A stretch of DNA of 26,920 nt from Octopus sinensis (Eukaryota): positions 1 through 26,920 of the forward strand of contig NW_021834105.1 in the NCBI RefSeq assembly GCF_006345805.1, given 5' to 3'. Position numbers and translations under genes: made by a program. Numbering within the stretch: the stretch's first letter is position 1; the number at the start of each line of letters is the position of its first letter. The notes beneath the pieces are model-generated. The model was given only the letters and a program-made list of their open reading frames with translations, was not told the origin of the DNA and searched no databases. This document shows positions 2,611-26,172 of this stretch, in pieces.

Positions 2611-2965
2611 GTATGGGATGTTACCGTTTTGGATACCTTCTCAAAGTCGAGGATCCATTCTTCCGCTGCGAACTCTTGTTCGGCTGGAAACCACGCCGAA
2701 AAGATGAAACTACAAAAATATTCTTCCCTCGCGGACCGCTACCGTGTTACGCCAATCGCCCTGAAGACCGCTGCAGCCGCGGCAAAGGAGACCGACTCGT
2801 TCCTCAACGAGTTCGGGCAGTCCATTGGGAGGAAGATTAAGGACCCGAGAGAGGGCCTCTGGTTCCGCCAGCGCATCTGTCTGGCCATCGTTCGCGGCAA
2901 CGCACACTGCGTCCTTGCCGCTGGCACATAACGCTAATTAATAATTGATTTTTAATGTAAAAAAA
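2611..2965 (+). mobile_element. 5'-truncated CRE-type non-LTR retrotransposon (RLE C-terminus with short A-tail)
   Basis: Frame of ORF 2629-2931 extends upstream to WDVTVLDT and continues AEKMKLQKY...TPIAL...WFRQRICLAIVRGNA. This matches the C-terminus of the longer copy at 22393-23523. An A-run follows near 2958. Confidence 0.8.
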
Positions 2966-3891: not shown

Positions 3892-3965
3892 GCCCCGGTA
3901 GCTCAGTTGGTTAGAGCGTCGTGCTAATAACGCGAAGGTCTAGGGTTCGAGTCCCTGTCGGGGCA
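3892..3965 (+). tRNA. tRNA-Ile (anticodon AAT)
   Basis: Full cloverleaf: acceptor GCCCCGG/TCGGGGC, A-box in TAGCTCAGTTGGTTAGAGC, anticodon loop CTAATAA, T-arm TAGGG-TTCGAGT-CCCTG. No encoded CCA; T4 terminator at 3972-3975. An A34 anticodon is typical of eukaryotes. Confidence 0.97.
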
Positions 3966-4767: not shown

Positions 4768-4892
4768 AATTCATATTTTGATTGATGGACTCCCATCTTC
4801 CTATTCATTCTTCTGAAGGCTGCAAATTATCCTCTCAGAATTAAACAGTTAGTCATCATCTTTTAATAAATAGCAATAAAAAACGTTTATTC
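4768..4892 (-). pseudogene. Ginger/gypsy-like integrase C-terminal remnant (continues 6459-6810 across the Tc1 insertion)
   Basis: Encodes RRMNRKMGVHQSKYEF, nearly identical to KRMNKKMGVQRSKYEF in the copy at 15240-15290. Confidence 0.6.
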
Positions 4893-4894
4893 TA

Positions 4895-4961
4895 CAGTAC
4901 CGGTCATATGTTTTAGACATTCTGAAAAAATCCCAGTGTTTGATTTTTCTAAAGAAAAATC
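4895..4961 (+). repeat. Tc1-like left terminal inverted repeat (67 bp)
   Basis: Exact reverse complement of 6390-6456, checked base by base. Confidence 0.97.
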
Positions 4962-5174
4962 TTATTAAAAAAATGCTTTTCATTAAGCATTATCCATTTT
5001 TTTTAGTTATTTATTTTTTCCCAATCTCATCGTCACTGTATTTTCGACATCTTGATCTTTTTATAGATTTTGTCGAAACTGGCCCAGTCATATATGTTTT
5101 AGACATTTACGATGCACATCCATAATCTGGAATTTTTAAAAGTTAAAACGAGTTTTTATTAATTAAAACACAAG

Positions 5175-6158
5175 TTAGTATTTAGTTACATCTCCTTTTT
5201 TCGATATTACATCATGTATTCTATTTGGGATCGACAAATACAAGTTTTGAATATAATCATCTCCCATCTTGTTCCATTCATCTTTTGCCATCTCCCATAG
5301 TTGCTTAACGTTCTGAGGGTTTCTATTTCTGATTTTGCTCTTTAAATAATGCCAGCAATTTTCTATTATGTTAAGATCTGGCGATTGTGCAGGCCAATTG
5401 TTTAAAATATTCACTCCTTTTTCAAGCAAATAATTTTTTGTAGACCGTGAAGTATGACATGATGCACCATCTTGTTGGAAAATAAAGTTATCATCATATA
5501 TCTCAGAAAGCCCTTGTTCCAAGATTCGTTGATATTCTACGGAATCTACATTTCCTTCGCACAATATCAAGGCACTTTTTCCATCGTGTCTGATACCGCC
5601 CCAAACCATGATTGAAGGTGCGAATTTCTGAGTTTTCGTTGTGTAGTTCGAATTGAATCTATTTCCAGGAGGTCTCCTTACGAATTCTCGTGCTTTCGAA
5701 ATTAATTCGATGCGGCACTCGTCAGTAAAAATGACCTTATTCCAATCGAATGAAATGTTTCTAGTGCAGAATATTTTTCTCTTCTTGATATTATTAGTTG
5801 AAAGTCTAGGTTTTTTGGCTGCTATTCTTACGAAAAGTTCATTTTTGCGTAAGATTCTTCGTACAGTTTCGACACTGACGGTTTCCGTAATATTTAGGTC
5901 TTTTCTGATTTCATTCGCTGTTTTTTTGGGAAAACGTCGAGACTCACGTACAAGATTCCTTTGAGCACGTGCCGAAAGAATACAATTTCTTCCAGATTTT
6001 GGTCTGTCGTAAAACCCATTTCCATCCAAATACCGTTGGTAAGTGTGATTTACGGCGCATCTGGATATTCCAAGTAAAATCGATATTTCCTGTACGGTAT
6101 GACCATTTTCTCGCATAAAAACAATTCTATGACGCTGTTCAACAGAAAGTCGTGGCAT
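5175..6158 (-). CDS. Tc1-family DDE transposase, 327 aa
   Basis: N-terminal HTH/paired-like region with GR motif; FTDE, MVWGGI, FQQDGASCH and WPAQSPDLNIIEN motifs. The second D and the E are separated by 35 residues. Confidence 0.97.
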   Translation of the reverse strand: MPRLSVEQRHRIVFMRENGHTVQEISILLGISRCAVNHTYQRYLDGNGFYDRPKSGRNCILSARAQRNLVRESRRFPKKTANEIRKDLNITETVSVETVRRILRKNELFVRIAAKKPRLSTNNIKKRKIFCTRNISFDWNKVIFTDECRIELISKAREFVRRPPGNRFNSNYTTKTQKFAPSIMVWGGIRHDGKSALILCEGNVDSVEYQRILEQGLSEIYDDNFIFQQDGASCHTSRSTKNYLLEKGVNILNNWPAQSPDLNIIENCWHYLKSKIRNRNPQNVKQLWEMAKDEWNKMGDDYIQNLYLSIPNRIHDVISKKGDVTKY

Positions 6159-6389
6159 ACTGCTTTCAAATTAATTTAAAACACGTTTCCGATACGAAAA
6201 ATAGAAAAAAAGTATAAATTTTATTGAAATATAATGAATTTAAATAAAATGTCTAAAACATATGACTGGGCCAATTTCGACAAAATCCTTAAACATATGA
6301 AGAAGTCGAAGATAAAGCGAAGATAAGATATGAAAATGATAAATATAAATAATATAGATAATACTTACTAAAAAACTTTTATTTTATTG

Positions 6390-6456
6390 GATTTTTCTTT
6401 AGAAAAATCAAACACTGGGATTTTTTCAGAATGTCTAAAACATATGACCGGTACTG
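6390..6456 (-). repeat. Tc1-like right terminal inverted repeat (67 bp)
   Basis: Exact reverse complement of 4895-4961. Confidence 0.97.
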
Positions 6457-6458
6457 TA

Positions 6459-6810
6459 AATTTCAAGGTTTTCTACACTTCCAATTCTACTATATCAGAA
6501 CTTTTTAAATTTTTCTCAACATCTGATTCAGCAACAATGTTAAATCCAGGAATACCACGATATCTTTGAAGTGGATTAGCGCCTAGAAAATAAAAATGCA
6601 ATTTACAAGTGGACGAATGAGCTCTGATTGCATAAAAATACACCCTTTCGAATGTGTTTTATCCACTCTTGTTTATCATCCGAGGCCATCATTTTGGATA
6701 ACAACCTTGTAATCCTCCGATCAAATCGTTCAAGTATCCCCTGATTGTTCGGCCTTCCATGAGTAATTTTGAATTCTTTACATAAATTAGAAATGTGAAT
6801 ATTTTTGAAT
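6459..6810 (-). pseudogene. Ginger/gypsy-like integrase core fragment with a 24-nt intron (6583-6606)
   Basis: EFKNIHISNLCKEFKITHGRPNNQGILERFDRRITRLLSKMM...W, then a frameshift. AHSST|CANPLQRYRGIPGFN joins after removing GTAAATTGCATTTTTATTTTCTAG, and parallels HSAINETPFKKFRGIYGIN in the 14853-15558 copy. Confidence 0.7.
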
Positions 6811-6857: not shown

Positions 6858-7100
6858 TTAGCAGCAGAGAATAAGATGGAATGAAAATTCCACCAAAATG
6901 GCTATTGATATTCGTTGGAAAAACCATGTTCGTTTCCGATGATTATTTCTCCTTCTGCTTGCCAGGTCCCCCAGTTTAATAAGGAATTTTTTACTTATGG
7001 GACCGAGGACTCCCGACGTCTCCACTGCGATCGGGGCAAAGATATGACGGTGCACCGTATTTCTGAATTCTGTTATCAGAGTGTATATATCAGCAAGGGC
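6858..7100 (-). mobile_element. CRE-type retrotransposon 3' fragment
   Basis: HIFAPIAVETSGVLGP...WFFQRISIAI matches the CRE C-terminus at 22393-23523. Confidence 0.8.
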
Positions 7101-7229
7101 CATGACTCATGAAAATGTCGTTTAATTTTCAGCCTCTCTTTTGCAATTTACTTTTCAGACTTTACTTTTCAGAATAACAAGACATTTCCATTTCACATAA
7201 ATAAGTGGTGGGAAAGGGAATTATCACTT

Positions 7230-7547: not shown

Positions 7548-8652
7548 TATACTTCCAAGAAGCTGATATATAGCTCTTGTTCTTGGAAGATGGATTTTAT
7601 TATCATTGGAGCTCCCATGTGTCTTTCAGCCATAGAAGCTTCATTTTCGGAAAAAATTTCGAATCTTTCTAAAATGATCGAGAGGCTTAAAAACATCGAG
7701 GCCCACGTCGCATTTTTTCTCCTCGAAATCACTTTTCCGTCCCCAAGGTCCTTTATACGCTAAGATGTGCACCCTGTTTCCACAGAAGTGACCTCATATC
7801 TGATTTCGATTACATCCTTAAGCTTGGTATGAACTCCCTATGCAATCTTGCTTTCGACGATTCTGGCTGGTCTCAAGCGACCTTACCTGTGCGCTGGGGT
7901 GGGCTTGGTCTGAGATACTGTTCCGATTTGGCTCTTCCGGCTTATCTGTCCTCTCATTTTGCCTTGCGCACTCTCTCAGACATCGTTCTCCGAAACCTTC
8001 CCGAACAGAAAGTGTCTGCAGACTTCATCGCGGCAGGTCTCTTATGGTAGGCCCGGTTGATTCGAGGCGGCCTGAGTCCGAGGACAACCAGCGCCAGTGG
8101 GACAAAATTGTATGTCGGTCTTTGTACGAAAAACTCACTCTCGATACTTAACCAACACAAATTTGTCAGACCCATAAATGTCGCTGTGGCGGAACTGTGG
8201 ACGAGTTCGGGTTACATCCCCTCTCCTGACGGCTTAACTACATCCCCTTTGAGAGGGAAAATTCCTTATATGGGATTCTACTTGCTGTGACACATTCTCC
8301 AACGGGAACCTAGCCAGGTCGGCCGTCGACCCAGGCTTTGCTTCCAATCGCGCTGAAGATCTCAAAATCCTGAAATACGGTCATCTCTCCAGCTTCGTTT
8401 TCACGCTCATCGCCATTGAGACCTCTGGGGTCTTCGGCCGCAAGTCGCTTTGTTTCCTACGCAGTTTGGGGAGAAGAATCGCCAAAAGGAGGGACGACCC
8501 GAGAGAGTCCTTTTGGCTTCTTCAACGCCTCTCCATTGCCGTAATCCGCGGCAACTGCTTCGCAATCCGTGAGGCTGGGAGGGCGCCTAACCTGCGTAGT
8601 CTTAAACAATCTTTCTCCCTTTTCTAACTGTCTATTTGTAATTATAAAAAAA
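7548..8652 (+). mobile_element. Degraded CRE-type retrotransposon (post-RT region plus RLE, internal deletions)
   Basis: Fragments IIGAPM..., MIERLKNIEAHVAFFLL, WSQATLPVRWGGLGLR..DLALPAYLSS, HKCRC..HPLS, PDG, WDSTCCD, IAIETSG and LQRLSIAVIRGN occur in the same order as in 21371-23523. An A-run follows near 8645. Confidence 0.85.
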
Positions 8653-9011: not shown

Positions 9012-11739
9012 TCAATCAAACCAAATACGTTTAAACTCATTCACATCAAAAGAACCATTACATTTGGGACATTTCCTTTTCCTCGTCTGATATAGGTGAG
9101 TCAAGCACTCCAAACAAAACACGTGAAAGCAGGTTGTCAGCACTGCATTCTTCCTATGAATATTACAACACGGACATGTCAGTCTGTCCTAAACATTCCC
9201 TCACATTCTACTACCTTCAGTTCCTTAATCTCATCCAACAACATACTGTCTCCCTCCACTCCCCTCAACTTTGATATCTTGTCCAACTTTCTCTTCAATC
9301 CATCAATCTCCTCCTAACAAAAGTGACAAATCATAACAACCTCATATCTTCTCTCACGGAAATGCCCATCTCTCACCAGTTTACTCTTCTCCTGCAATAA
9401 TCGTTGTGAGTCCTTCAACTGGTCGTAATGTGAGTCAGATATTATTTTGAACTCATCACACTTTTGCAGCACTTCGGAGTATCGACGACCACTCAGCTCA
9501 ATTCGATCATCTCTCAGTCTACACTCAAAATAAGCCTCTTCAACTTGCACTCGCTTTCAAGATTAGTCAATAGTCTTGTTAATGAACTCTCCTTTTCTTC
9601 CAATTGTGAACTAATGTGGATTGTTGTGTCCAACTGATTCCGAAGTAGTCCCTCCTGTTGTCTCCACTCCTCCTTCTCCTTGTTGAGCTCATCAATGACA
9701 TGTCTGTGCTTTATTCTCTTCAATGTTTCATAACAAATTAATACTTCGGCTAACAGTCCCACATAGGCTTGCTCTTTTGCAGTCAACTGGTCTATTAGAA
9801 CTCGATTCCTCTCCTGCATATCTTCTAAAGCTTGGCCTGTCACTTCCATTTCCTGCATTAGAGTATCTTCTTGCTAAAAGTGGCTTCAAATAATCAAGTT
9901 TACCTGTTTGTGCCACGTCAGTTTACGTTTAATGTCTTCGTTGGTAATTCTATGCTGGTTTATACATCTTTGTAGACTCTTTTCGTTCTCACTCGATTCT
10001 TTCAGTCTTCTTATTAGTTCTGAACAAAGGTCCCTAGCCTTGTCCAACTCGCTGATTGTTCCCAATGAATACTATCAATAAACTAATAACTATAAACCTC
10101 AAATTCTTCAAAAATATGTGATTCTGTTCTATAATAATCAGTTAATTAATTGTAATAAAATACCCGGCAAAATCAGGTAGATTGATCTAGTGGTGTTACA
10201 TTAGTAACTAACCTCGTTATTTCTGAGAGTTTCATTTAGTTTAATGTGATATTTATTATTTTTATTCTTCAATTGCTTATTAAAAGCCTGCAGACTATTT
10301 ATAAGATGTCTCATTTCTCTGTGGACGTCATTCGTGTGTTCTTTTATTAAAGCATATTGCTCATTCTCCAGCTTAACCAGTTCTAATTCCTTTTCTTTGC
10401 CTGCTAGTTGTTCAGTCAGTCTAATGATATCCTCCACCTTCTGACTCTCTGATATTTTCTTTCCCGATTTTAAATCATCTTTAATCTGCTGAATTGCTAC
10501 TTTAAGAATATAATTCAATTCGTTGCTTTCTGTCAGTCTGGCCTTCACTCTTGCCAAGTCAGAAATGCAGTGGAAAGCTGTCTTTTCACTGACGACAACT
10601 CGACAGACAAGTCTGGATAGTCCACTCTCTCATTCCCACTCTCCACTAACACAGTCAGCCTGTCAATCTCTTTCTGCATTGTTTTCCAATTCCTGCAGAC
10701 GAGAGTCATTTAAATGTCTAAGATTGTGTTCTTCCAGACGTAGTTTTTGTAGTTCTGTCATATCTTCTGTACTGAGCTGTGGGTTAGTGGGTTCCTGGGG
10801 AGGATTAATGTCCTTTGTCTCTGTGGATATTTTAGAAATGTCTTGCTGTGATTGTTTTAAAGATTCCTCGAGTTTTATTGAATATTTTTCAAGCATGGCA
10901 AATTCATAGTTCAGTTCATCCAATTTCCGTTTATTTTCTGCAGCTGAATTAATTTCAATAGTCAAATTATCATCCGTTTCATTAAGCTATTACGTAATAA
11001 CTCAGTAAGACTAACCTTATAGAATAGTCCACTGTTTTGTTTGTTTACTTTGATCAGTTGGTTGTTTAGACAGACATTTTCATTAGTAAGTTGTGTGACC
11101 AAATCAGCTGAGAGAAGTTTAAGGTTCTCTTGAATAGCACTGTCGGGGGATTCTTTAAGAGTGTTGTAAAACGTGGTTAATTTGTCCAGTTTAGTCACCA
11201 GTCTATGATCTTTGATATATATAGGAAACCCTTCGAAGACCTGATGAAGGATAAGCATTGAAGTATTCGAATATTCAACACGCCTTTGAAATTCCTTCTC
11301 GAGTTCTTCAGTCTCCATTGTCGATATTTTTCTCTGAAACACTTTGAGTGATTCAGTTTCTACAACTAAAAGCAGATGGGTACCATCCGGTGGAATATTC
11401 TCGAAGGAATCACAGTTATAATGTTCAATGAGGCTGCGTACTTCAATATTGTGCTAAGTGTGACTAAGTGGGATTAACTTGGTTCCAATGTCGGTTTATA
11501 AGTGCAAAAAGTGCCTCGTCGGTTTCTCTTCTTTCTTCAAAAACAGCGATTTTGCTTTTTTGTCTAAAGTCTTGATTTTTAGCATATTTGAGGGCTTCAG
11601 AGAGTTTTTGATTTTGAAATCCAAGAATTCGAGATTCCAGTTCTTCCTTGTTATTATTTGAATGTTTATTTAGTACGGAATTAGACGTGCCTTTGAAACT
11701 AGTTCCTTGCAACGTGTCAAAAAATTTATTTTGCCGCAT
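9012..11739 (-). CDS. BRE1: E3 ubiquitin-protein ligase BRE1 (RNF20/RNF40-like histone H2B monoubiquitinase), about 13 exons and about 799 aa after correcting two 1-nt frameshifts
   Basis: N-terminal FQNQKL...[31 protein letters not shown], and C-terminal [29 protein letters not shown]...RKCPKC. Inferred GT-AG introns (plus-strand coordinates): 11454-11478, 11360-11383, 11203-11229, 10987-11015, 10187-10212, 10129-10163, 10072-10097, 9874-9903, 9718-9744, 9519-9544, 9314-9340, 9189-9214. They total 328 nt, leaving 2400 nt. Confidence 0.92.
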
Positions 11740-12004: not shown

Positions 12005-14850
12005 ATGGAGTCTAAAAAGCACAGGAAACTAACACCTTTTTTGCTACTCTCGTTTAATGTTAAAGGAATCGCTAAATCTTAGAAAAGAACAGCATTGTGC
12101 GAAGATCTGTAAAGATACAAAGTCTCTCTTGGATGTTTACACGAGACAAAACTGCATGGGGGATTAAGAGGAACTGTCGGGCTATCACTTCATCTCATTC
12201 CGAAGTGAATGCAGACACTTTGGCCAAGGATTTGTAATAAAAAGAAATTGAAACCTATGGTTCATCGCTTTTGGAGCATAAATGATCGGATTTGTGTACT
12301 TCAGATTAGCATGAATAAGCTTTGCCCATCTAAAAGCTTACTATCCATTATAAACGTATACCCACCCCACAGTGGATGGATTGAAAAAGACCCCACTGAA
12401 ATAGACTTGTTCTACTTTTGTCTGTCTGAAGCTTATTCTGAACTTGTTCCCTCGTCAATAACTATCATTGCTGGCGACCTTAACGCCAAAGTGGGATTAC
12501 GAAGAAACCCGGATGAAACCTTTATGGGAAAACACGGGAGGGGAATGAGGAACGTGGCAGGAACATTACTTGCCGATTTTTGTCAGGCAAACGGTCTATT
12601 CATTTGCAACACTGCATTCATGCACCCTGCAAGACACAAAACTACTTGGGCTGGGTTTAGGAAGAATTTATCCGGCGAATTTATAAATATTTATAACCAG
12701 ATAGATTATATAATCTGTCGATCTAAAGACAAAGCTCTTTTTACTGACGCAAGATCATATAGTGGGTCAAACATTGACAGTGACCACAAAATGGTCATTG
12801 CAAGAATATCACTGAATAAACATCTAAACAAAACAAATATCAAAGGGAGGCAGGATATCATTAGGAAAAGAAAACTCGACCTAAATGGACTCTCAATACA
12901 ACAAAAGGGAGATAACTTGATACGTATTTGGGAAGTGTGGAAACAAATCAATCATTCCCCAAACTTTGGGGACAAATCCAGGAATCAATACGAGGAGCAG
13001 CGGAGAAACAGCTCATGGACACAGAAATTGTTACCACATCACCAAATGGAACTACTGAGATATCGCTCCTTGTGAAGAAACAAAAATCTATTTGACTACA
13101 ATATTAAAATACGGAGGACAAGCACATCAAAGAAAAACTTGGTCGGGAAAGATCGAATATTAAGAAGATCAAGAAGTCCGTGTCATATATGTCAAGGAAG
13201 GAAGCTGAGATACAGATCAAGGCCAGAGAAGCCTTGAAAGACAATGTAAGATATTATGAGGCGATCAGATTATTACGAGGACGTAAACACAGACAAGCAC
13301 TAATCATAAATGACAAAAATAAAAGACGAATTGCAGATTCCACAGAATTAGCAGGACTAATCGCCGGCCACTTGGAGAAACTGTTTAGATCCAACAGCAA
13401 AGGAATTTATGGATATACCGGGAATCCCATGAAATTGGAGTTGGAAATAACTTCTGCAGAAGTGCAAAGAGCATGTGCTAAGCTCAAAAACAATAAAAGC
13501 CCAGGACCAGACGGACTAGGACCAGAGCTACTCAAATATGGAAGTGAAAAGCTAAATGTCCTCATTGCGGACCTCTTCAACGGAATGTTTAAAAGAAACA
13601 ACCATTTACCCATTGACGAGTGATACTGGTCCCTGTCCAAAAACCGAACAAAGCTAAGGGAAAAGTAAAAAAATCTGAGGCCAGTAATTTTTATGAATAG
13701 AATACGGAAAGTTCTTGCAATCATTAAGCTAGAAAGAATAAAACCTCGCATCGAACTATTTATATCCGCTTTTCACAGCGGATTTCGGGAAGGAAGATCG
13801 ACTTCTGACATCGTGTGGACCCATAGATGGCATTGTTCCGCCATTCAAAGGTTCAAAAATGCGACATACATTCTTGGCATCGATATGTCAATGAATCCCT
13901 TGATGAATCTTCTATCCGGATGATCATGGCACTCTTATCAGAAACCTATCTATCGGTCAGGGTACGAGACAAGTGCTCTAAACCATTGAACAACATCTGG
14001 AACATCTCAAGGGATCCGTTATCTCCTATAAAACTGTTTGCATTGAGAGAACTAAAACCATACTATGAAGGAAACGGATCAATGTGGTGGCATACGCGGA
14101 TGACGTGGATTTTATTTCTTTCTTCCGAAATTGATGCCAAATAGACTTGCTGAGTGGTTCCTCAATGTAAATTTGGAGAAAACAGATTTACTGAACTAGC
14201 AAGACAGAAGTCTAAGCTGGACGAACATTGGAGAAAAGTAAAGAAACTCGGATCTCTATTGGGAGACGAACAAACGTTATTATGCGAAAAACACATGCAA
14301 ACAGTGCATACTACGCAGCTTAAAGGAAAATTGCTAAAACGCAAAGGACTCAGCACAAAACACGGATACGATCATACATTCACTAGTGAAACCATACTTC
14401 TATATAATGCCCGAACTTGGGGACTTTCCGTTACAGACAATGACAACCTAGACTCTTTCCATAGAGATCATCTCCGACGTACTCTACCCTCCAAGTGGCA
14501 TTCAAGGCAGAACAGTTTATCCCAGACATCAAGCAAACCAATCTCATCTCTCGAAATTACCCAATGCAGATGGAGGCTGTTTGGAACATTCTAATGATGG
14601 ATTTGGATGCACCGGAAACGCCCGCTAAGGATGACTATTTTGAAGCTGGGGCCATCGTTTTTGTGGGCGACCAAGAAATACTCTCCTGGGTACGCTGGAT
14701 AGAGACCTAAAGAGAGCTGGTAAAGAATTGAAGAACCGGGACGATCTTGATCCACTACGGGACGTCGCCCAAGATCGCGGGAAATGGAATAAACTAATTA
14801 ATCGTATTGTTTCCTGTGCTGCACAATTTGAATGATTACTAAGTAATAAA
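12005..14850 (+). mobile_element. Degraded APE/RT LINE (RTE-like), copy 1
   Basis: Endonuclease motifs SFNVKG, LHET, IAGDLNAKVG, NQIDYI, DSDH. RT motifs KSPGPDG..PELLKYG, LRPV, HSGFREGRST, GIDMS, AYADDVD-like. C-terminal CRWRLFG and AQDRGKW. Many frameshifts and stops. Confidence 0.9.
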
Positions 14851-15699: not shown

Positions 15700-17910
15700 T
15701 TATGCAACACGGCTTTTGAACGCCCTTCTCGGCATAAATCCACCTGGACGGGAAGTCGACGTGACAAAAATGGGAACTGCGTGCCTATTTATAACCAAAT
15801 TGACTACATCATCTGCCGACAAAAAGATGTATGTCTTCTATTGGACTCTCGCTCTTATGGTGGATCACTCGTTGACAGTGACTACAGGGTGGTTGTCAGC
15901 AGATTCAGTCTGCAGAAATCATACTTACTGAAAAAATCAAATCATCGAATGACTCATACACCGGGCAGATACCTGACGGAAAAACTGGTCTTCTCACCAT
16001 CGACCCGAATCATCTACAAATCATCGATTGAAGAATCACTCAAAAATATGAAGCCTGGACTAACGCCGACTGCCGCTTGGAAAGCTATGTCCAGTGGAAT
16101 CCATCAGGCCGCAGATAAATGTGTTGGAAAACACCCAAAGAACAAGAACACTATCAGATTATGCCATCCGGATGTTTTCGCCCTATCGGCTGAACAATAA
16201 GAGCTCAAGTTGACGATTGAGAACACTACGGATCCGGATACCAAACATGCACTGAAAGCCCGACAAGCAATTATTCAGAAACAAATAAAGCGACTGAATC
16301 TCCAATACGGTCGGGATACTCTGACTTCCCGACTTAAAGAGCTGGAATCTCTCAAGGACAATGCACAAATGTTTCAAGCATTACGGCTGCTCAATAGGAA
16401 GAAAAGCAGCCCCAAACCTCGACTCCTAACCAACAAAGGAACTGAAGTATTTGACCCGGTGGAACAGGTAGTAAGCCTTATAGCGGATTTCTTTAAACAA
16501 CGATTCAACACGAACACGGTGCCGATATCACCTTTCTCTGCCCCAGCACGACCTCTGAGGAATAAAATTACTCTGGATGAAGTTAAAAAGGCAGCTAGCA
16601 GGCTAAAAAACAATCGAGCTGCGGGGCCGGACGACATCAGTGCGGAGCTTTTAAAATACGGACCCGAGTCTCTCTTAAGGAATATAGCGAACATTCTGAA
16701 TGATATGTTTACTGAAAACGACTTACTCCACTCGGATCCGGAATTCTAATCGTATCGGGGACAGAGTGAACACCTTTCTGTCGCCGAACCACAGCGGATT
16801 CAGAGAAGGAAGATCTACCGCAGACGTTCTGTGGGGCTACCGATGGCGATGTGCAACCCACCAAAGATTCAAAAGTGTCGCAATCATCCTGGAGATCTAT
16901 ATGTCGAGAGCTTTCGATAGCATTCACCGAGATCTGCTAATGAAGATCCTGCGGAGCTTCTTAGAAGAGGATGAAACCAGAATGATCCAGGTACTACTGA
17001 CAAACACGGAACTTACTGTCCGCCATGGGAAGACTTTGTCCAGACCCTTTTTAAACAAATGTGGGAACTCCTCAGGGTAATTCCCTTTCACCACTGCTCT
17101 TCGTGATTTACCTCGAAGCTTCCCTACGAGAGCTGAGAAGCCTATACGGTGAGTCAATCACCGAAATTATCTATGCGGATGATGTCGATTTCGTGTCGAG
17201 CGACAGATCAGCACTGGCTAGCCTGCTGGAGATTGCACCAGGAAAACTCGGGGAATGGTCTCTAAAAATGAACCCGGACAAGACGGAAGTGGTTATCACG
17301 CTCAGACACTCAACTTATGGAAACATGGAGACTATCCAAGAAGCTTGACTCACTGCTTGGTGACCGGGAGGACATAATGCGTAGAAAAACCCTGGCTGCT
17401 GTTGCTCTAAAAACTGTTATTAAGAATTGTTTATGACACTGCTCGATGGGCCCATCACTACGCTCTAGAGTCTACAACGCTTTCGTCAAACCTGTACTAC
17501 TTTACAACTCCTCAACATGGGGCATTTCTGATTCAGATTTAAAGAACTTCGATTCTCCACAGAAACTAGCTTCGTTCCCTGAACTACTTACACTGGCCGA
17601 AGAAAATCTGCAACTCGACTATTTACAACATCAGCAACTCGGGGCCAATTAGCCGGGACATCGTCAATTGCTGCTGGAGGCTATTTGGACACATCTTGAG
17701 GATGGATCCAACTTCACCTCCCTACGTGACCATGGAAGAATACTTCCTATCAGATGACGTAAAATTCCGAGGACGACTCAGAACAACCCTACCGGTTGTT
17801 CTGCAAGACGACTTGAGGCATTTAAAGAAAACCCTGAAGACCTGTGATGATCTCGACGAACTTCGGATACTGGCCCAAAACCGCGGAAGCTGGAAATCGT
17901 TGGTACAGAA
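15700..17910 (+). mobile_element. Degraded APE/RT LINE (RTE-like), copy 2, 5'-truncated
   Basis: CNTAF..RHKSTW, IYNQIDYIICR, RAAGPDDISAELLKYG, HSGFREGRST, MSRAFDSI, GTPQGNSLSPLLF, YADDVDF, KPVLLYNSSTW, RGRLRTTLP, AQNRGSW. Related to but diverged from copy 1. Confidence 0.9.
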
Positions 17911-20058
17911 CAGACGTCACCAAACTACGGCCCGCGGGCCGATCCGGCCTGCACACATTTTTATCCGGCCCGCGCACTATTTCGAGCTATTCAATTAATA
18001 CCTTAATAATTAACTTAAATAAAAACTTTAATTAAAAAATTAAACTATTTTTGCAAAGATTTAATTCGAAAAAAACTTATCAGCATTAACGTTAAATTTT
18101 TCTTTGTTGCTATGTCTAATATGAAAAGAAAGGGTGACCGCGAATGCCGTGTATTCAATAAATTAGGGAATTGAAGTATTTTTTTGCGAAAGATGAATTA
18201 AAGCAGAAACTTATGTTTAATATGGCCACGAACATCTCTCTGTTATGAAGGAGTATCACTTCGACGTCATTATGAAACGAATCATGTTCCGATATATTCC
18301 AAGTACACTGGAAAGCTACGTGAGGATAAAGTTGAATCACTGAAACGCACTTTACAAAAATTCAACAAGGCCTTATAAAAAAAAATTTTGAAAATAATGA
18401 AAATGTAACAAGAGCTGGATACGAGATAACGAAAATTATTTCACAACACGGGAAACCCTTTAGTGATGGATTATTGAAGCAGTTAATTGTTGAAGCAGTT
18501 AAATTCTTCCTTATTTGATGGAATAAGTTTGTCGGCGAGTTCTGTATCACGGAGAACTGAAGAGCTTGGAAAAATATATATTTACAAATTTGTGAAAAGA
18601 CAAGTAATATGTTGTGGTATTCTCTTGCATTGGATGAGTCAGTTGACATTTCGGGAACATCGTAACTTCTTATTTTTATTCGTGGAGTTGATGAGAATAT
18701 TTCCATAACTGAAGAACTGGCATCTGTTTGTTCTATTCATGGAACAACCACTGGAAAAGATATTTTTGATGAATTGGAACAAACTATAAGTGACTATAAC
18801 CTTGAATGGGAGAAACTGAGTTGTGTTACGATTGACGGGCAAAGAATATGGCTGGTTCTAAAAAGGGTCTAGTTGGGCAAATAACTAATAAATTGGAGGA
18901 ATTACATATTTCAAACACTTTGTTCATTCATTGCATCCTTCATCAGCACGCACTATGTGCGAAGGCTCTTAATATTTCATGTGTGTTGAATCCAGTTATT
19001 CGCATAATAAACTTTGTTCGAGGGAGCTCACTTAATCACCGTCAGTTTAAAGTTTTACTTGACGATTTTGGATCTGAATATTTTGACTTACCATATTACA
19101 CTGCAGTTAGATGGCTTAGCTGTGGTAATGTATTAAATAGATTTTATAAACTCCGAAGTGAGATTGATATTTTTCTAACCAGTAAAAATAACTATTATCC
19201 CGAATTATCAGATCTTGCTTGGCTATCAAAATTATCATTTTTGGTTGATGTTACAACTCACATGAATGAGCTAAATCTGAAATTACAAGGAAAGGAAAAC
19301 TTAATTTGTGATTTCTACAGGATAATTAAAGCATTTCGACAAAAATTGATGTTATTCGAGTCACAACTTGGAGTACGTCAGTTTTCACACTTTTCTTGTT
19401 TTAAAAGTTTTTGTGAGGCAAACTGTAATGAGATCGACATTACTTTCCAAATTGGGATTATCAAAGAATTAAAACATCATTTTTTACATAAGTTTTCTGA
19501 ACTTGACAAAATTGAAAGCGATATAATTTTGTTCGAAAATCCATTTTCTTGTAATGTTGAAAATGTTCAACATGAATTACAATTAGAAGTTATTGACTTA
19601 CAATCAAATGAACAGCTCAAAGATTGTCACAGACGGACCAAACTCGCTGAGTTCTACGAATATCTCAAGGATGATGAGTTTCCGAGACTAAAGAATTTTG
19701 CGATAAAGATGATTTCTATATTTGGCACAACTTACCAATGTGAGCAAACGTTTTCGAGGATGAAATATGTTAAGTCTGCCCATCGTGCAAGATTGACTGA
19801 CGGACACTTAAAATCAATTCTCATGATAGGATGCAGCAATTTAAAACCAATATTGATGAACTTATCAAAAAAAGATCACAGTTCCATAGCTCTCATTAAA
19901 ATTTTTGTTTACTTTATTTTTGTTTAAATTAGTTTTTATTGTAAAAAACACACTTATGAATTTCTAGTAAAACTATAATCCTATGCACGTGCTCCGGCCC
20001 GCGTTCATTGTGTTGGGGTCAATCCGGCCCGCGAGTGCATAAAGTTTGGTGACCCCTG
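17911..20058 (+). mobile_element. hAT DNA transposon, Buster/SPIN (GTF2IRD2-like) group
   Basis: Termini CAGACGTCACCAAACT and the reverse complement of CAGGGGTCACCAAACT (14/16). Subterminal CGGCCCGCG repeats occur at both ends. Flanking 8-mers GTACAGAA and GTCTAGAC match at only 5/8. Confidence 0.88.
18112..19927 (+). pseudogene. hAT transposase; 5' half frameshifted, 3' 359 aa open (18848-19927)
   Basis: KRKGDRECRVF..., RRHYETNH zinc finger, ALDESVD, VTIDG, HCILHQHALC, VRWLS, LNLKLQGK, and hAT dimerisation motif FGTTYQCEQTFSRM...RLTD. Confidence 0.9.
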
Positions 20059-21142: not shown

Positions 21143-23568
21143 CATCACGGAAAAATCCCCCCAGTGGTTCAAAACCCAAGTTAGTCGTAAACTCATGGAT
21201 GGCGACATCCGTGCGGCAGTTCGGGTCCTTTCGTCCGCTGATTCACTTGCTGAATCTACTGCCGAGACTTTGGAACACCTCAAAAACAAACATCCGATGC
21301 CCCCAGATGACTTACGGGAGTTTCCCACACGAGACAATGCAATTATACTGTCAATTTCTGATGATGAATTTTGGAAGGGATTAAATCTTTCAGACCGAGT
21401 AGCAGTGGGGGATTTGATGGTCTCCGGCCGAGTCATATAAAGGACATGATTTCCCGATTGACTATGGAGACTGGAATCCGCCTGATCAAGTGTATTACCA
21501 AGCTTGTCGAACGGATTGTCAATGCTGAGATTTCAGGCTTTGCAAGGGATCTACTTTTCTGTTCACACCTTATTGCTTTCCGAAAGAACGATGGAGGAGT
21601 CCGCCCCATTGCAGTCGGTAATGTCTTCCGGAGGCTCGCATGCAAAATTGCAGCCCGAAGAGTCTGTCCCCGTGTTGCCGCTGAATTATCTCCAGTCCAA
21701 CTGGGAGTTGGTGTTTCCAACGGATGTGAAGCTGCTGTCCACGCGACAAGAGCTTTTTTTTCACCTGACACAAGACATTCCCCAAATTCCTTTGCGGTGA
21801 AGCTGGATATCTCAAACGCGTTCAACAGTCTGAGAAGGGACTGTATGCTGGAATCGTGCTCGCAGCGTACCCCAGAGATCATGAGTCTGGCTCACCTTGC
21901 TTACGGGTCCGAAAGTTCGCTTGTCTTTGACAAACACATTGTCCGTTCACGGACTGGAGTCCAACAAGGTGACCCTCTTGGGCCCTTACTATTCGCTCTG
22001 TCAATCGACGAGGTGGCTCGTAATGTAAAGACACCTCTCAACCTTTGGTACCTTGACGATGCCACTATTGGTGGCCCTGTTGATTTTGTCTTGGATGAGC
22101 TATATAAAATTGTTCCTGCCCTGGCAAAAATGGGGCTGATAATCAACACCAAAAAAACTGAGATCATAAATATCTCAGTCCCAATTCAAGACTTTGGCTT
22201 AGTAATGGAAAAGATTTCAGAAATCTTGCCAGACACAAAACAAACACGCCTCAACGATGTTTATTTTCTTGGGTGTCCTTTCGGAGAGTCCGAAGTGCAA
22301 AACCACCTCAGAGCTAAGAGTGTCGAAATGTCCCGTTTTACTGAACGCCTCTCTCTACTCGACTCCCACACGGCCTTTTTCCTCCTCAAAAATTGCATCC
22401 ACGTGCCCAAACTGTATATTTATTGAGATGCTCGCCCTGCTTTATACAAGATGAAATATTGCATTCTATCGATGATACGTTAAGATTGTGTGCCGAGTGG
22501 ATCCTAAATGTCCGTTTCGATAATGACGGGTGGACCCAGTGTAAACTACCTCTTAATTCTGGCGGAGCTGGCCTAAGATCCGCCCTGGACCTTGCCCTCC
22601 CAGCTTTCCTGTCCTCTCACTCATCCTGCCGAAGGCTATCCTTGGAGATTCTACATAAATCCCCCGAATCTTCTTTGGACAGGCCTTTTGAAGATGGATG
22701 TATGCTGTGGAAGGAATCAGGATTAAAATTCCCGATCCAAACATCACTCCAACAGAGCTGGGACAAATTACGCTGCGAATTCACCGCAGACAACCTGGCA
22801 ATGAGGCTCGACCAGCACCGCCTCGCCTGCTTACGCTCTGCAGCTGTGCCACACAGTGGGTCATGGCTGAATGCTATGCCAATTGCTGGCCTCGGAACAT
22901 TATTAGAGGATGACTGCATGCGTATCGGTACTGCACTGAGACTCGGACTTGACATCTGCGAGCAACATCGTTGCAGATGTGGAAAAATGGTTGACGTCAA
23001 AGGTGTACACCCACTCTCTTGCAAACGAAGTGCTGGCCGAGCTCCTCGGCACTCCGCTATTAACAATGTTATCTTAAGAGCCCTTGAGTCGGCGGGCTTC
23101 CCCTCGATCCTAGAGCCAGTGGGCTTGGATCGTGGTGATGGGAAAAGACCCGATGGAATGACCACTTTTCCCTACTCCTGTGGAAAATCGTTGGTTTGGG
23201 ATTCAACGTGTGTTGACACCCATTCCAAAACTAATATGATCTCTTCTGCTGTCTCTCCAGGTTCTGCAGCAGATGCTGCAGAGCAAAGAAAAATTGCCAA
23301 ATACGCAAATCTTGGACAACGGTACCGCTTCGTACCTATCGCTGTGGAGACTTCTGGGGTAACCGGCCCTCTTACGACTTCTTTCATCAGAGAAGTCGGA
23401 GGAAAAGTTGCTAGGCGACGTGGGGAGCCTCGAGAAGTGTCATGGTTATTCCAACAAATTGGAATAGCTGTCGTTCGCGGCAATGCACACTCCATCATGC
23501 GTGCAACCGCAAGTGCCTTTTAATCATTGACTAACTTATTTCATTTAAAAAAAAAAAAAAAAAAAAAA
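21143..23568 (+). mobile_element. CRE-clade non-LTR retrotransposon (RT plus RLE), 5'-truncated, with 22-nt poly(A) at 23547-23568
   Basis: KLMDGDIRAAVR; RT motifs GGVRPIAVG, QLGVG, KLDISNAFN, GVQQGDPLGPLLF, WYLDD; CCHC knuckle CRC...HPLSC; RLE motifs RH, KRPDG, WDSTCVD, KY, PIAVETSG, QQIGIAVVRGNA. Split into three ORFs by 1-nt losses near 21368 and 22410. Confidence 0.93.
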
Positions 23569-24346: not shown

Positions 24347-26172
24347 TAGGGCAACCAATTGCAATTTTTTGCAATTAAATATAATTTAATTAAAATTCGA
24401 TAAATAATAAAGTAATGAATAGACATTAATTTTAATTATATTTTTATTCGATTTAAATTTGCAATTTTTTGCAATTTTTTGTAGTCATTTTACAATTTTT
24501 TGCAATTTTTTAATATTAAAAAATAATATAATTATAAGTAAAAGATTATTAAAACGTGTTTTAGTTGTTTGTTGTAATGGGTAAAAGGACAGTGTCACAG
24601 AAAATTTCATTTTATGCAAAGAAATTCCCCGAGTTTGTTATTGACAGTGAAGGGAATTTATTTTGCTCCAATTGCTCAACTGTTGTACGGTGTGACACAA
24701 AATTTTTTGTTGATGCGCACCGTTCTTCAAAAAAACATTAAAAGCACACAGTATTTCTTTGAATTTAAATTTATAGAATGGACAAATTCATCTCAGAGTT
24801 CACAAACATTTCTTTCGGCGATAACGGATACTCGAAAGGATTGGGGGATCAAAGTAACACAAGCGTTTTTGGAGGCAAACATACCAATTTATAAAATCAG
24901 ACATCCTTCCCTCATACGGCTTTTTGAGCAGGAAACATATCCTTTGCCATCTGAATCATCTTGCAGGTTAAATGTTAAAGAAATATCAAAATATAAAATT
25001 AATACCATTCAGACTCATTTACTGTTGTTTTTTTAAGTTATTCAATAGTGGGGAATGTGTTTTTTTTGTTTGTGATGAAGCCCAAATCAATGGAACTCGT
25101 TTTTTAATTACTTTGATTGGGAAAATCTCCACTCCAAAAAATCTTCATTTAGTATCGTGTACCAATCTATATTATCCGCCTACTACTTCAACAATTTGTG
25201 TTGAGGTGGACAAAGTAATAAAGAAATTTTCTATTGAACGTGAAAATTTTATATTATTCGTTACAGATGGGGCGAGATATATGACCAGTGGTATATATAA
25301 ATAAATTTAATTTTAGCTGGGGCATCAATGAAATTGATATACCAAAATCTTTTCCACGTGACTTGCGTGTCACATTTATTGCACAACTGTGCTCTAAAGA
25401 TTAAGGCATACTTCGCAGATGTTGATGAATTGATTTCGTCTATAAAGGCTGCCACAGTCAAAAACAAGAGACGTTTGGAGATGTTTTCACGAATCGGAAA
25501 TCCACCCGAAGTTGTGGTTACAAGATGGGGAAGCTGGCTAAAAGCAGCAAAATATTACTCCCAGAATCTTCCAGAAATTATTAAAATCGTATCTGAATTT
25601 GAAGGAGATGGAGTTTTAATACAAAATGTTTTAGTTTTTAATTATTTTAGGCAAAAAAATCAGTGAATAATCCTACGTTGTTTCCAAGCTTAACCCAAAT
25701 CAGTTCAAATTATTTGGGATTAATTGAAATGATTTCAAATACTGAATTGCTTGATTACTCCATTGCAACAGCTTATGGTGATCTAAACACCCTAGACTTT
25801 ACATCAGATCCATGCGACATAAAATCCTATATATCAAAAAAGCTTGAGAAATCAGGAATACTAAGTATTCTTGAATTCTCAAATAAGAATCTATCGCCAG
25901 AAGTTTATTCACATCTCAGAAAATGTAGCGCAAGTTCAGCATCTATCGAAAGGGCAATATCTCTTTTGACGAAAATTCTTAGTAAAGAGAGGAACTTTAA
26001 ACCTGAAAATGTTCAGGAATATTTGATTTCCTATTACAATAAATAATTTCGTTAATTTTTTGCATAATGTAATGTTTACAATTAAAAAAATTATTTTTGC
26101 AATTTTTTACAATTTTTAAAATTCATTTTTGCAATTTTTTTTATTAAAAAGTGCAATTTTTTGGTTGCCCTA
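24347..26172 (+). mobile_element. hAT DNA transposon (CGGBP1-like zinc finger plus DDE), full-length
   Basis: Perfect 12-bp TIR TAGGGCAACCAA, perfect 8-bp TSD ATTATGAC (24339-24346, 26173-26180), and subterminal TGCAATTTTT repeats at both ends. Confidence 0.95.
24577..26046 (+). pseudogene. hAT transposase with micro-introns (24751-24776, 25291-25316, 25628-25650; possible degenerate 25013-25037)
   Basis: Zinc finger LFCSNC...DAHRSSKKH, EANIP, CDE, VTDGARYMTS|AGASMK, HVTCVSHLLHNC, TRWGSWL, GVLIQN|AKKSVNNP, SASIER. The introns join ORF-track pieces in frame; one extra 1-nt loss is needed near 24739. Confidence 0.85.

Follow-up and report, generated by a model that had tools for sequence, protein, structure and literature searches.

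A BRE1 gene divided by fifteen introns of 24 to 35 nucleotides, probably from a dicyemid

We analyzed a contig filed under Octopus sinensis (NW_021834105.1, assembly GCF_006345805.1, positions 1 to 26,920; here called the window, 26,920 nucleotides [nt] long) and found on the minus strand of its 9012-11739 region a gene for BRE1, also known in animals as RNF20/RNF40. BRE1 is a RING E3 ligase; together with RAD6 it attaches a single ubiquitin to histone H2B (K120/K123). The coding sequence becomes continuous when 15 segments of 24-35 nt are removed, all of them with canonical intron ends, and many of these candidate introns stand where other animals have much longer ones. Intron positions, similarity ranking, genomic context, and the retention of introns together suggest that the DNA probably comes from a dicyemid (Dicyema), a fast-evolving protostome. 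The architecture is of an already known kind, here seen in one more gene.

Without splicing, the BRE1 frame consists of about a dozen open reading frame (ORF) pieces that are jointly BRE1-like. Taking out short GT...AG segments yields one continuous frame of 770 amino acids (aa), and the frame is not open otherwise. The start codon is the ATG at 11739-11737, which an in-frame TAA precedes by six codons, and the stop codon is the TGA at 9014-9012, so that the span given in a preliminary description of this DNA is exact. From 5' to 3', the exons measure 63, 168, 70, 130, 187, 286, 19, 412, 23, 31, 168, 129, 173, 178, 99, and 177 nt, and the introns 30, 25, 24, 27, 29, 31, 26, 26, 35, 26, 30, 27, 26, 27, and 26 nt (median 27, mean 27.7). 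They are labeled i0 to i14 in Table 1, where the numbering departs from the order along the gene at i14 and i13. Each of the 12 intron lengths listed in the preliminary description corresponds to a GT...AG segment that we located, in the same order, and the junctions LLAE/RIK, KQ/QEDTL, and ELK/DRLTCPCC (a slash marks the intron) had been quoted correctly. About twelve introns do not suffice, however: two in-frame stops remain at about 10664 and 10631, and passing them requires two introns absent from the earlier list, i4 (31 nt) and i5 (26 nt), on either side of a 19-nt microexon. With i0, also unlisted, 15 introns are needed or indicated.

The 15 introns are uniform in their ends as well as their lengths. 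GT begins and AG ends every one (15/15); at position 3, eight have T, six have A, and one has C, and position -3 is T in 11/15, giving a TAG 3' end. They are richer in A+T than the exons (68.7% versus 61.8%), and YTRAY-like motifs are present in several, among them i6 (TACTAAT) and i7 (AACTGAT). Eleven interruptions break the frame, each 25-35 nt long and bounded by GT...AG, and outside the intron segments the final model has no stops or frameshifts. Six of the 15 introns have lengths divisible by three, and four of those (i0, i2, i14, and i13) lack an in-frame stop. This is about the number expected by chance, and there is no sign of selection for stop-containing introns in this gene. The expectation of an intron-dense but miniaturized gene was borne out, with 15 introns of this size and canonical ends.

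To compare gene models, we scored them on a hidden Markov model (HMM) built from ten bilaterian BRE1 proteins. The final model scored 381.5 bits, the top score among the variants compared. Minimum-intron dynamic programming opened the frame with 11 introns, none longer than 59 nt; it deletes conserved residues, ignores in-frame introns, and is outscored by the homology-guided model. Two single introns that would replace groups of smaller ones are in frame and score lower: a 72-nt intron at 10700-10629 spanning i4 to i5 (375.7 bits) and a 141-nt intron at 10212-10072 spanning i6 to i8 (376.9 bits). Versions of i10 of 32 and 38 nt are likewise in frame and have a lower HMM score. A frame-0 stretch taken as the RLCELEKL homologue was rejected, as it has no GT donor before a stop and the ELQKL...RLTV alignment fits the orthologue spacing. 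The final model is thus the one preferred by score over the 72-nt, 141-nt, and other i5 and i10 variants, which stand as less favored alternatives.

Judged by its matches, the encoded protein is a metazoan, specifically bilaterian, BRE1/RNF20/RNF40 orthologue. The best matches among PDB sequences are human RNF40 (8gui_L, 5e-64) and RNF20 (1.4e-56), with yeast Bre1 at 3.4e-9. The protein is collinear with human RNF40 and RNF20 over three ordered stretches (query residues 30-99, 113-459, and 489-797), and it shares its collinear domain order with human RNF20/RNF40, Drosophila Bre1, and yeast Bre1 (PDB 8gui, 5trb, and 8t3t). For database searches, we masked the low-information coiled coil with X, as the unmasked full-length query was swamped by coiled-coil words (two plant matches). 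The masked query matched 1402 proteins at E<1e-15, and all 120 of the 120 listed were bilaterian BRE1/RNF40. The C-terminal 254 aa gave 114 matches, in which every informative name was animal BRE1, RNF20, or RNF40; one of the 114 was an unannotated "hypothetical protein" filed under a plant. In phmmer comparisons, slowly evolving protostomes gave 270-282 bits, deuterostomes 210-242, cnidarians 202-212, and a sponge 156, compared to 68.5 bits for a plant; yeast Bre1 reached 39 bits among the PDB sequences. These scores agree with the earlier designation of the gene as metazoan-type. No match exceeded about 44% identity over the alignment length, and there was no near-identical protein in a database of 5.8 billion clusters; therefore, the source species' own BRE1 is not in that database.

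The functional parts of the protein are largely recognizable. The C3HC4 RING finger matches Pfam zf-C3HC4 at 22.3 bits, above the 21-bit cutoff, and the human RNF20 RING chain 5trb_A at 1.3e-26. All of its zinc ligands, the cysteines and the histidine, are intact (CPCC...C.H..C..C...C..C), and its identity to the shorter animal BRE1 RING matches listed is 51-65%. The N-terminal conserved helix, the REMRHLI motif, and the C-terminal coiled coil are preserved; the N-terminal conserved region is the Rad6-binding region of BRE1 in yeast and human. We predict, from orthology, that the protein monoubiquitinates H2B with RAD6. Once i13 is removed, the Pfam BRE1 profile PF08647 matches over its whole length (1-95 of 95) at residues 533-627, though with a score under its cutoff; this stretch aligns gap-free with RNF40. 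PF26052 and PF26095 were not reported by the Pfam scan for this protein, nor for the orthologue from the nemertean Tubulanus, and are hence uninformative. The gap-poor match to RNF20/40 claimed earlier holds for about 100 aa at the N terminus and about 300 aa at the C terminus and fails in the central region, which is much shorter than in human. There the acidic/basic low-complexity region is almost wholly gone. The nearly invariant LLLDMYKSAPKEQRDK motif is not recognizable, and the whole protein has 770 aa compared to 961-1001 in human and 892-1001 in most animals.

We then asked where other animals carry introns in the same gene. Eight genomic BRE1 loci were used, with each protein mapped exactly onto its DNA, followed by a joint alignment: Lamellibrachia (annelid, C-terminal part only), Tubulanus (nemertean), Helobdella (leech), Acanthosepion (cuttlefish), Nymphon (sea spider), Alligator (RNF40), and the cnidarians Hydractinia and Oculina. 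Nine of the 15 introns (i0, i1, i14, i3, i9, i13, i10, i11, and i12) share both alignment column and phase with orthologue introns, which are 49-6740 nt long. Three more (i2, i7, and i8), in poorly alignable stretches, agree only in phase and order. By a rough estimate (15 random introns, about 2300 positions, and about 25 orthologue positions), about 0.2 coincidences would be expected by chance, so the alignment places the positional pattern far beyond chance. Exons of 168, 129, 173, 178, and 177 nt have identical lengths in Tubulanus and Lamellibrachia. Random frameshifts or chance are excluded because the GT-AG ends fall at conserved positions and these exon lengths are exact to the nucleotide. 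The two exons bounded by i6, i7, and i8 measure 23 and 31 nt, down from about 299 and 85 nt, and keep their phases. Five widely shared, ancestral intron positions are missing from the gene.

Two of the deposited gene models are themselves odd. The BRE1 model of Acanthosepion pharaonis has, at about residues 338-460, unusual phase-1 and phase-2 introns, one of them 49 nt, and a peptide with no alignment to other BRE1 proteins; in the Alligator RNF40 model, about 40 conserved residues are skipped. Errors of annotation in the public records, rather than biology, probably account for both.

Several introns are shared by nearly all orthologues. The intron i1, which shifts the frame and has an in-frame stop, and the frame-shifting i3 each have the same column and phase in 7/7 mapped full-length orthologues, and i9 and i12 match in all mapped orthologues, including Lamellibrachia for i9. 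Column and phase of i11 recur in six of eight orthologues. The position of i13 is the same in 7/8; if retained, this intron would leave a 9-aa insertion at exactly that point relative to human RNF20/40, and its removal adds 15.3 bits on the BRE1 HMM and brings out the PF08647 match. The stop-free i0 would read through if retained. It corresponds in column and phase to the first intron in 7/8 animals with N-terminal exons mapped, its removal makes exon 2 168 nt long, as in Tubulanus, Helobdella, Alligator, and Acanthosepion, and the score rises by 4.7 bits. The orthologues thus strongly indicate that i0 is very likely a real intron. Two introns have narrower distributions. The candidate i14 ranked top of 57 stop-free multiple-of-three GT-AG candidates (+7.5 bits) and coincides in column and phase with a Tubulanus intron at QAYD/R, a position common only to this nemertean among the mapped animals. 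The column and phase of i10 are found in all five protostomes (Tubulanus, Helobdella, Acanthosepion, Lamellibrachia, and Nymphon, at EKEL-S) and are absent from Alligator, Hydractinia, and Oculina.

In the variable middle of the protein, correspondence is looser. A phase-0 intron found in 7/7 mapped full-length orthologues lies three alignment columns from i6. The phase and order of i7, which is flanked by the 23- and 31-nt microexons, are those of the phase-2 intron of 7/7 such orthologues, and i8 agrees in phase and order with a phase-0 orthologue intron at QRDKV./L. The RLTV of the 19-nt microexon aligns to RLKV/RLQL of the orthologues. Three versions of the adjoining i5 (10650-10625 and 10652-10627, both 26 nt, and 10646-10627, 20 nt) score 381.5, 377.0, and 377.2 bits, respectively; the version in the final model is at phase 2, two columns from a phase-0 orthologue intron, and the 20-nt version matches that intron exactly in position and phase. 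On the other side of the microexon, i4 is needed because an in-frame stop at about 10664 would otherwise remain. This intron coincides with four residues (SQID) that the orthologues lack, and it may have been gained in this lineage, whose genome is otherwise known for shrinking and losing introns. Least certain of all is i2, our weakest call: a phase-1 intron lies a few columns away in 6/7 mapped full-length orthologues (the exception is Oculina), in a variable stretch, and its removal adds only 2.1 bits, which is within noise.

Table 1. Coordinates of the BRE1 gene, its RING finger, and its candidate introns in the window (a slash marks the intron within a junction; rows run from 5' to 3' along the gene).
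Feature	Position	Strand	Description
BRE1 (RNF20/RNF40 orthologue) gene	9012..11739	-	start to stop codon, 16 exons, 770 aa
intron i0	11647..11676	-	30 nt, phase 0, GTACTA...CAAG, junction KGTSNS/EELESRI
intron i1	11454..11478	-	25 nt, phase 0, junction NRHWNQ/HNIEV
intron i2	11360..11383	-	24 nt, phase 1, multiple of 3, stop-free
intron i14	11203..11229	-	27 nt, phase 2, GTTTCC...CATAG, junction HQVFE(G)LVTKL
intron i3	10987..11015	-	29 nt, phase 0, frame-shifting
intron i4	10670..10700	-	31 nt, phase 1, GTCTGC...AAAG
microexon	10651..10669	-	19 nt, encodes (Q)IDRLT(V)
intron i5	10625..10650	-	26 nt, GTTAGT...GAGAG; exact ends ambiguous
intron i6	10187..10212	-	26 nt, phase 0, contains TACTAAT, in-frame stop
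intron i7	10129..10163	-	35 nt, phase 2, 86% A+T, in-frame stop
intron i8	10072..10097	-	26 nt, phase 0, in-frame stop
intron i9	9874..9903	-	30 nt, phase 0, junction WHKQ/QEDTL, in-frame TGA
intron i13	9718..9744	-	27 nt, phase 0, junction LLAE/RIK, multiple of 3, stop-free
intron i10	9519..9544	-	26 nt, phase 2, junction ESEC(K)LRDD
intron i11	9314..9340	-	27 nt, phase 0, junction RRYE/EEIDGL, ends in in-frame TAG
intron i12	9189..9214	-	26 nt, phase 0, junction ELK/DRLTCPCC, frame-shifting
C3HC4 RING finger	9060..9176	-	CPCC...CFHVFC..C...CPKC; Pfam + 5trb_A match

If these segments were junk that happens to lie between GT and AG, bringing frameshifts or stops into a decaying pseudogene, the divergent protein and its PF08647 score below the Pfam cutoff would be readily explained, and splicing is in any case read from the sequence. 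Yet all 11 frame-breaking interruptions are GT...AG-bounded and fall within 25-35 nt, nine interruptions sit at conserved positions and phases, five exon lengths are nucleotide-exact, stops and frameshifts are confined to the segments, and the cysteines and histidine of the RING are preserved. Introns would be wholly absent from a processed pseudogene. We consider decay very improbable, and the locus most likely represents a functional BRE1 gene of single-copy type, a level of confidence that applies to our explanation as a whole.

Our interpretation of the gene is that the segments are spliced out and that ordinary animal introns have shrunk in place. Positions and phases would have been kept while the sequence was cut to about the minimum: GT at the 5' end, a probable branch A, and (T)AG at the 3' end. 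With 24-35 nt separating donor and acceptor, a branch A would fit but a polypyrimidine tract would be essentially absent, a minimal-motif reading that agrees with the reduced splice-site logos of D. japonicum and myxobolids (PMC13644364). The introns are presumably U2-type, handled by normal machinery and recognized by intron definition, under which microexons of 19-31 nt should be unproblematic. These microexons (19, 23, and 31 nt) would have arisen through a parallel shortening of the protein's variable middle. As for the modified spliceosome proposed in the preliminary description, the sole relevant published survey, of myxozoans, found U2 snRNA (small nuclear RNA) and U2AF conserved (PMC13644364).

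Introns this short also narrow down the source of the DNA, as the preliminary description had anticipated. Animal introns below 30 nt are known only from dicyemids and myxobolid myxozoans (PMC13644364), making a dicyemid the most likely source and a myxobolid the only other known option. Intron length is 26.2 +/- 1.9 nt in D. acuticephalum (PMC2222250), the median is 27 nt in Dicyema sp. (PMC6543705), and ultrashort introns occur genome-wide in D. japonicum (PMC6736024). Dicyemid GT-AG introns thus form a narrow band around 26-27 nt, much like the 24-35 nt with a median of 27 seen here. Dicyemids also resemble the window in their conserved intron positions, highly divergent proteins, LINE (long interspersed nuclear element)-rich DNA, GC content near 37%, and low gene density: the 67.5-Mb D. 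japonicum genome, at 36.7% GC, holds 5,012 genes and consists of repeats for 49%, with LINE ORF2 present in many copies (PMC6736024), and the window has about 37% GC, with BRE1 as the sole host gene in 27 kb and the rest taken up by LINE, Tc1, and hAT elements. The substituted invariant residues and the lost middle of the protein match the fast protein evolution reported for Dicyema (PMC2222250). Differences exist as well. Dicyemid genes average about 5-6 introns genome-wide versus 15 here, and the three microexons and the unique i4 set this gene apart from the dicyemid reports.

The rival source for the same architecture would be a myxobolid (Henneguya, Thelohanellus, or Myxobolus). Median introns in this group are 22-27 nt with reduced splice-site motifs (PMC13644364); the median in H. 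salminicola, 27 nt, equals that of the BRE1 gene, and the medians of T. kitauei and M. rasmusseni are 22 nt (PMC13644364, PMC4986447). Elements of hAT and Tc1/mariner type, as in the window, are present in T. kitauei (PMC4986447). Myxobolids, however, are cnidarians (Hadjez et al. 2026, PMC13644364; Yang et al. 2014, PMC4986447), whereas the BRE1 gene is protostome-like and its surroundings are LINE-rich and higher in GC. It has the protostome-only i10 and the nemertean-shared i14, and of the three intron positions common to both cnidarians it has none (0/3). Protostome sequences outscore cnidarian ones by about 65 bits as matches to the protein, whose score ranking resembles that of Tubulanus, not that of Oculina. 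The share of LINEs is 0.07% in the T. kitauei genome and about 0.3% in the M. honghuensis assembly (PMC4986447, PMC8855578), compared to at least three LINE copies in the window, and H. salminicola has 29% GC (PMC13644364). Most ancestral introns kept in miniature is the published dicyemid pattern; T. kitauei averages 3 exons per gene, against the 15 introns kept here. A dicyemid is therefore favored over a myxobolid because of the protostome intron positions, the protostome similarity, the LINE-rich context of about 37% GC, and the retention of introns, and we give the myxobolid source little credence.

The same features bear on a third animal lineage, a protostome that is neither dicyemid nor myxozoan. 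More lineages with ultrashort introns are expected by Hadjez et al. (PMC13644364), the protein database holds no near-identical sequence, and the likeness to dicyemids rests on published figures. Against this, GC content, repeats, gene density, median intron length, intron positions, and fast evolution all fit dicyemids (PMC6736024, PMC6543705, PMC2222250), and absence from the database is expected if, as we assume, dicyemid gene models are not at NCBI. Such a lineage is about as improbable as a myxobolid. In its fuller form, an undescribed protostome would have independently shrunk its introns below 30 nt, with i4 as a recent gain that created the 19-nt microexon; this we likewise regard as unlikely, if by a hair less so.

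Tiny introns occur outside animals too, and a protist, either a ciliate like Paramecium or a nucleomorph, with a BRE1 that is merely animal-like could be imagined. The BRE1 gene ends in TGA, which is the sole stop codon of Paramecium. Introns of the Bigelowiella nucleomorph measure 18-21 nt, and a depletion of stop-free multiple-of-three introns has been reported for Paramecium. In the BRE1 gene, by comparison, 4/6 multiple-of-three introns are stop-free, giving no hint of such depletion in this small sample. Paramecium introns are typically 20-35 nt, as cited in PMC2222250 and PMC4986447. The Paramecium and Bigelowiella introns thus resemble those of the BRE1 gene in length range, uniformity, and GT-AG ends, and they are of independent origin in unrelated lineages. 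For the gene itself, the informatively named best matches among those listed are all animal BRE1, with the plant match at 68 bits, and nine introns match animal positions and phases. TAA and TAG serve as stops within introns and are never needed as sense codons, and DNA of about 37% GC with animal-type LINE, Tc1, and hAT elements is unlike ciliate macronuclear DNA. A protist source is effectively refuted.

Several points weigh against a functional, spliced BRE1 gene from a dicyemid. PF08647 scores 21.8 bits, under its curated cutoff of 27.9, and several residues invariant among the ten bilaterian BRE1 proteins are substituted. Splicing is deduced from the genomic sequence rather than from transcripts; the stop-free i0, i2, i14, and i13 could in principle stay as coding sequence (i2 being weakly supported), i5 can be delimited in more than one way, and none of the eight mapped animal genes has a counterpart of i4. 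The dicyemid source is likewise assigned indirectly, by published figures rather than by direct sequence comparison. Lastly, the protein falls next to nematodes, on a long branch, in a neighbor-joining tree. We read this placement as a long-branch artifact, neutral on the dicyemid question, and gave it no weight. The same tree sets the protein among animal sequences and apart from plants.

Short introns in dicyemids have been described repeatedly, and the novelty implied earlier does not hold. Papers of 2007 (PMC2222250) and 2010 (Ogino et al., Gene 449:70, as cited in PMC6543705) described Dicyema introns that measure about 26 nt and lie at conserved positions, followed by genome-wide accounts in 2019 by Lu et al. 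(PMC6736024) and Zverkov et al. (PMC6543705), and a cross-animal comparison in 2026 (PMC13644364). Novelty in principle would arise only if the source were neither dicyemid nor myxobolid. BRE1 is not among the genes described in the accessible portions of the dicyemid intron papers. It offers a worked example of animal introns shrunk to about 26 nt with ancestral positions and phases kept, with 15 tiny introns and three microexons within 2.7 kb. Standard aligners and gene finders ignore introns below about 30-50 nt, and a BRE1 gene of this kind would be reported as broken or fragmented.

Outside BRE1, the window is mostly filled with mobile elements. A Tc1/mariner element at 4879-6472 appears to be complete, with terminal inverted repeats of about 220 nt (arms at 4879-5098 and 6255-6472, 79-83% complementary). 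Its transposase ORF (5175-6158, minus strand) is intact, encodes 327 aa with HTH_Tnp_Tc3_2 and DDE_3 domains, and has no tiny introns; the exact protein is not in a public gene-call index. Three non-long-terminal-repeat (LINE) copies on the plus strand (12209-14594, 15781-17998, and 21371-23523) carry endonuclease-reverse transcriptase and RVT_1 signatures and are frameshifted into several ORFs. In a by-eye comparison, the short ORFs at 2629-2931 (+), 6858-7103 (-), and 7829-8050 (+) resemble parts of the ORF at 22393-23523 (+), sharing the motifs ...IAVETSG...VRGNAH... and ...DLALPA(Y/F)LSSH..., and are apparently dispersed pieces of one LINE family. Two hAT transposase remnants are on the plus strand, one at 18848-19927 with a 359-aa ORF and a hAT C-terminal dimerization domain and the other, at 24614-26046, split over several ORFs. 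Alone among the repeats stands a tRNA-Ile (anticodon AAT) at 3892-3965 (+), identified by Rfam (64 bits) and ARAGORN.

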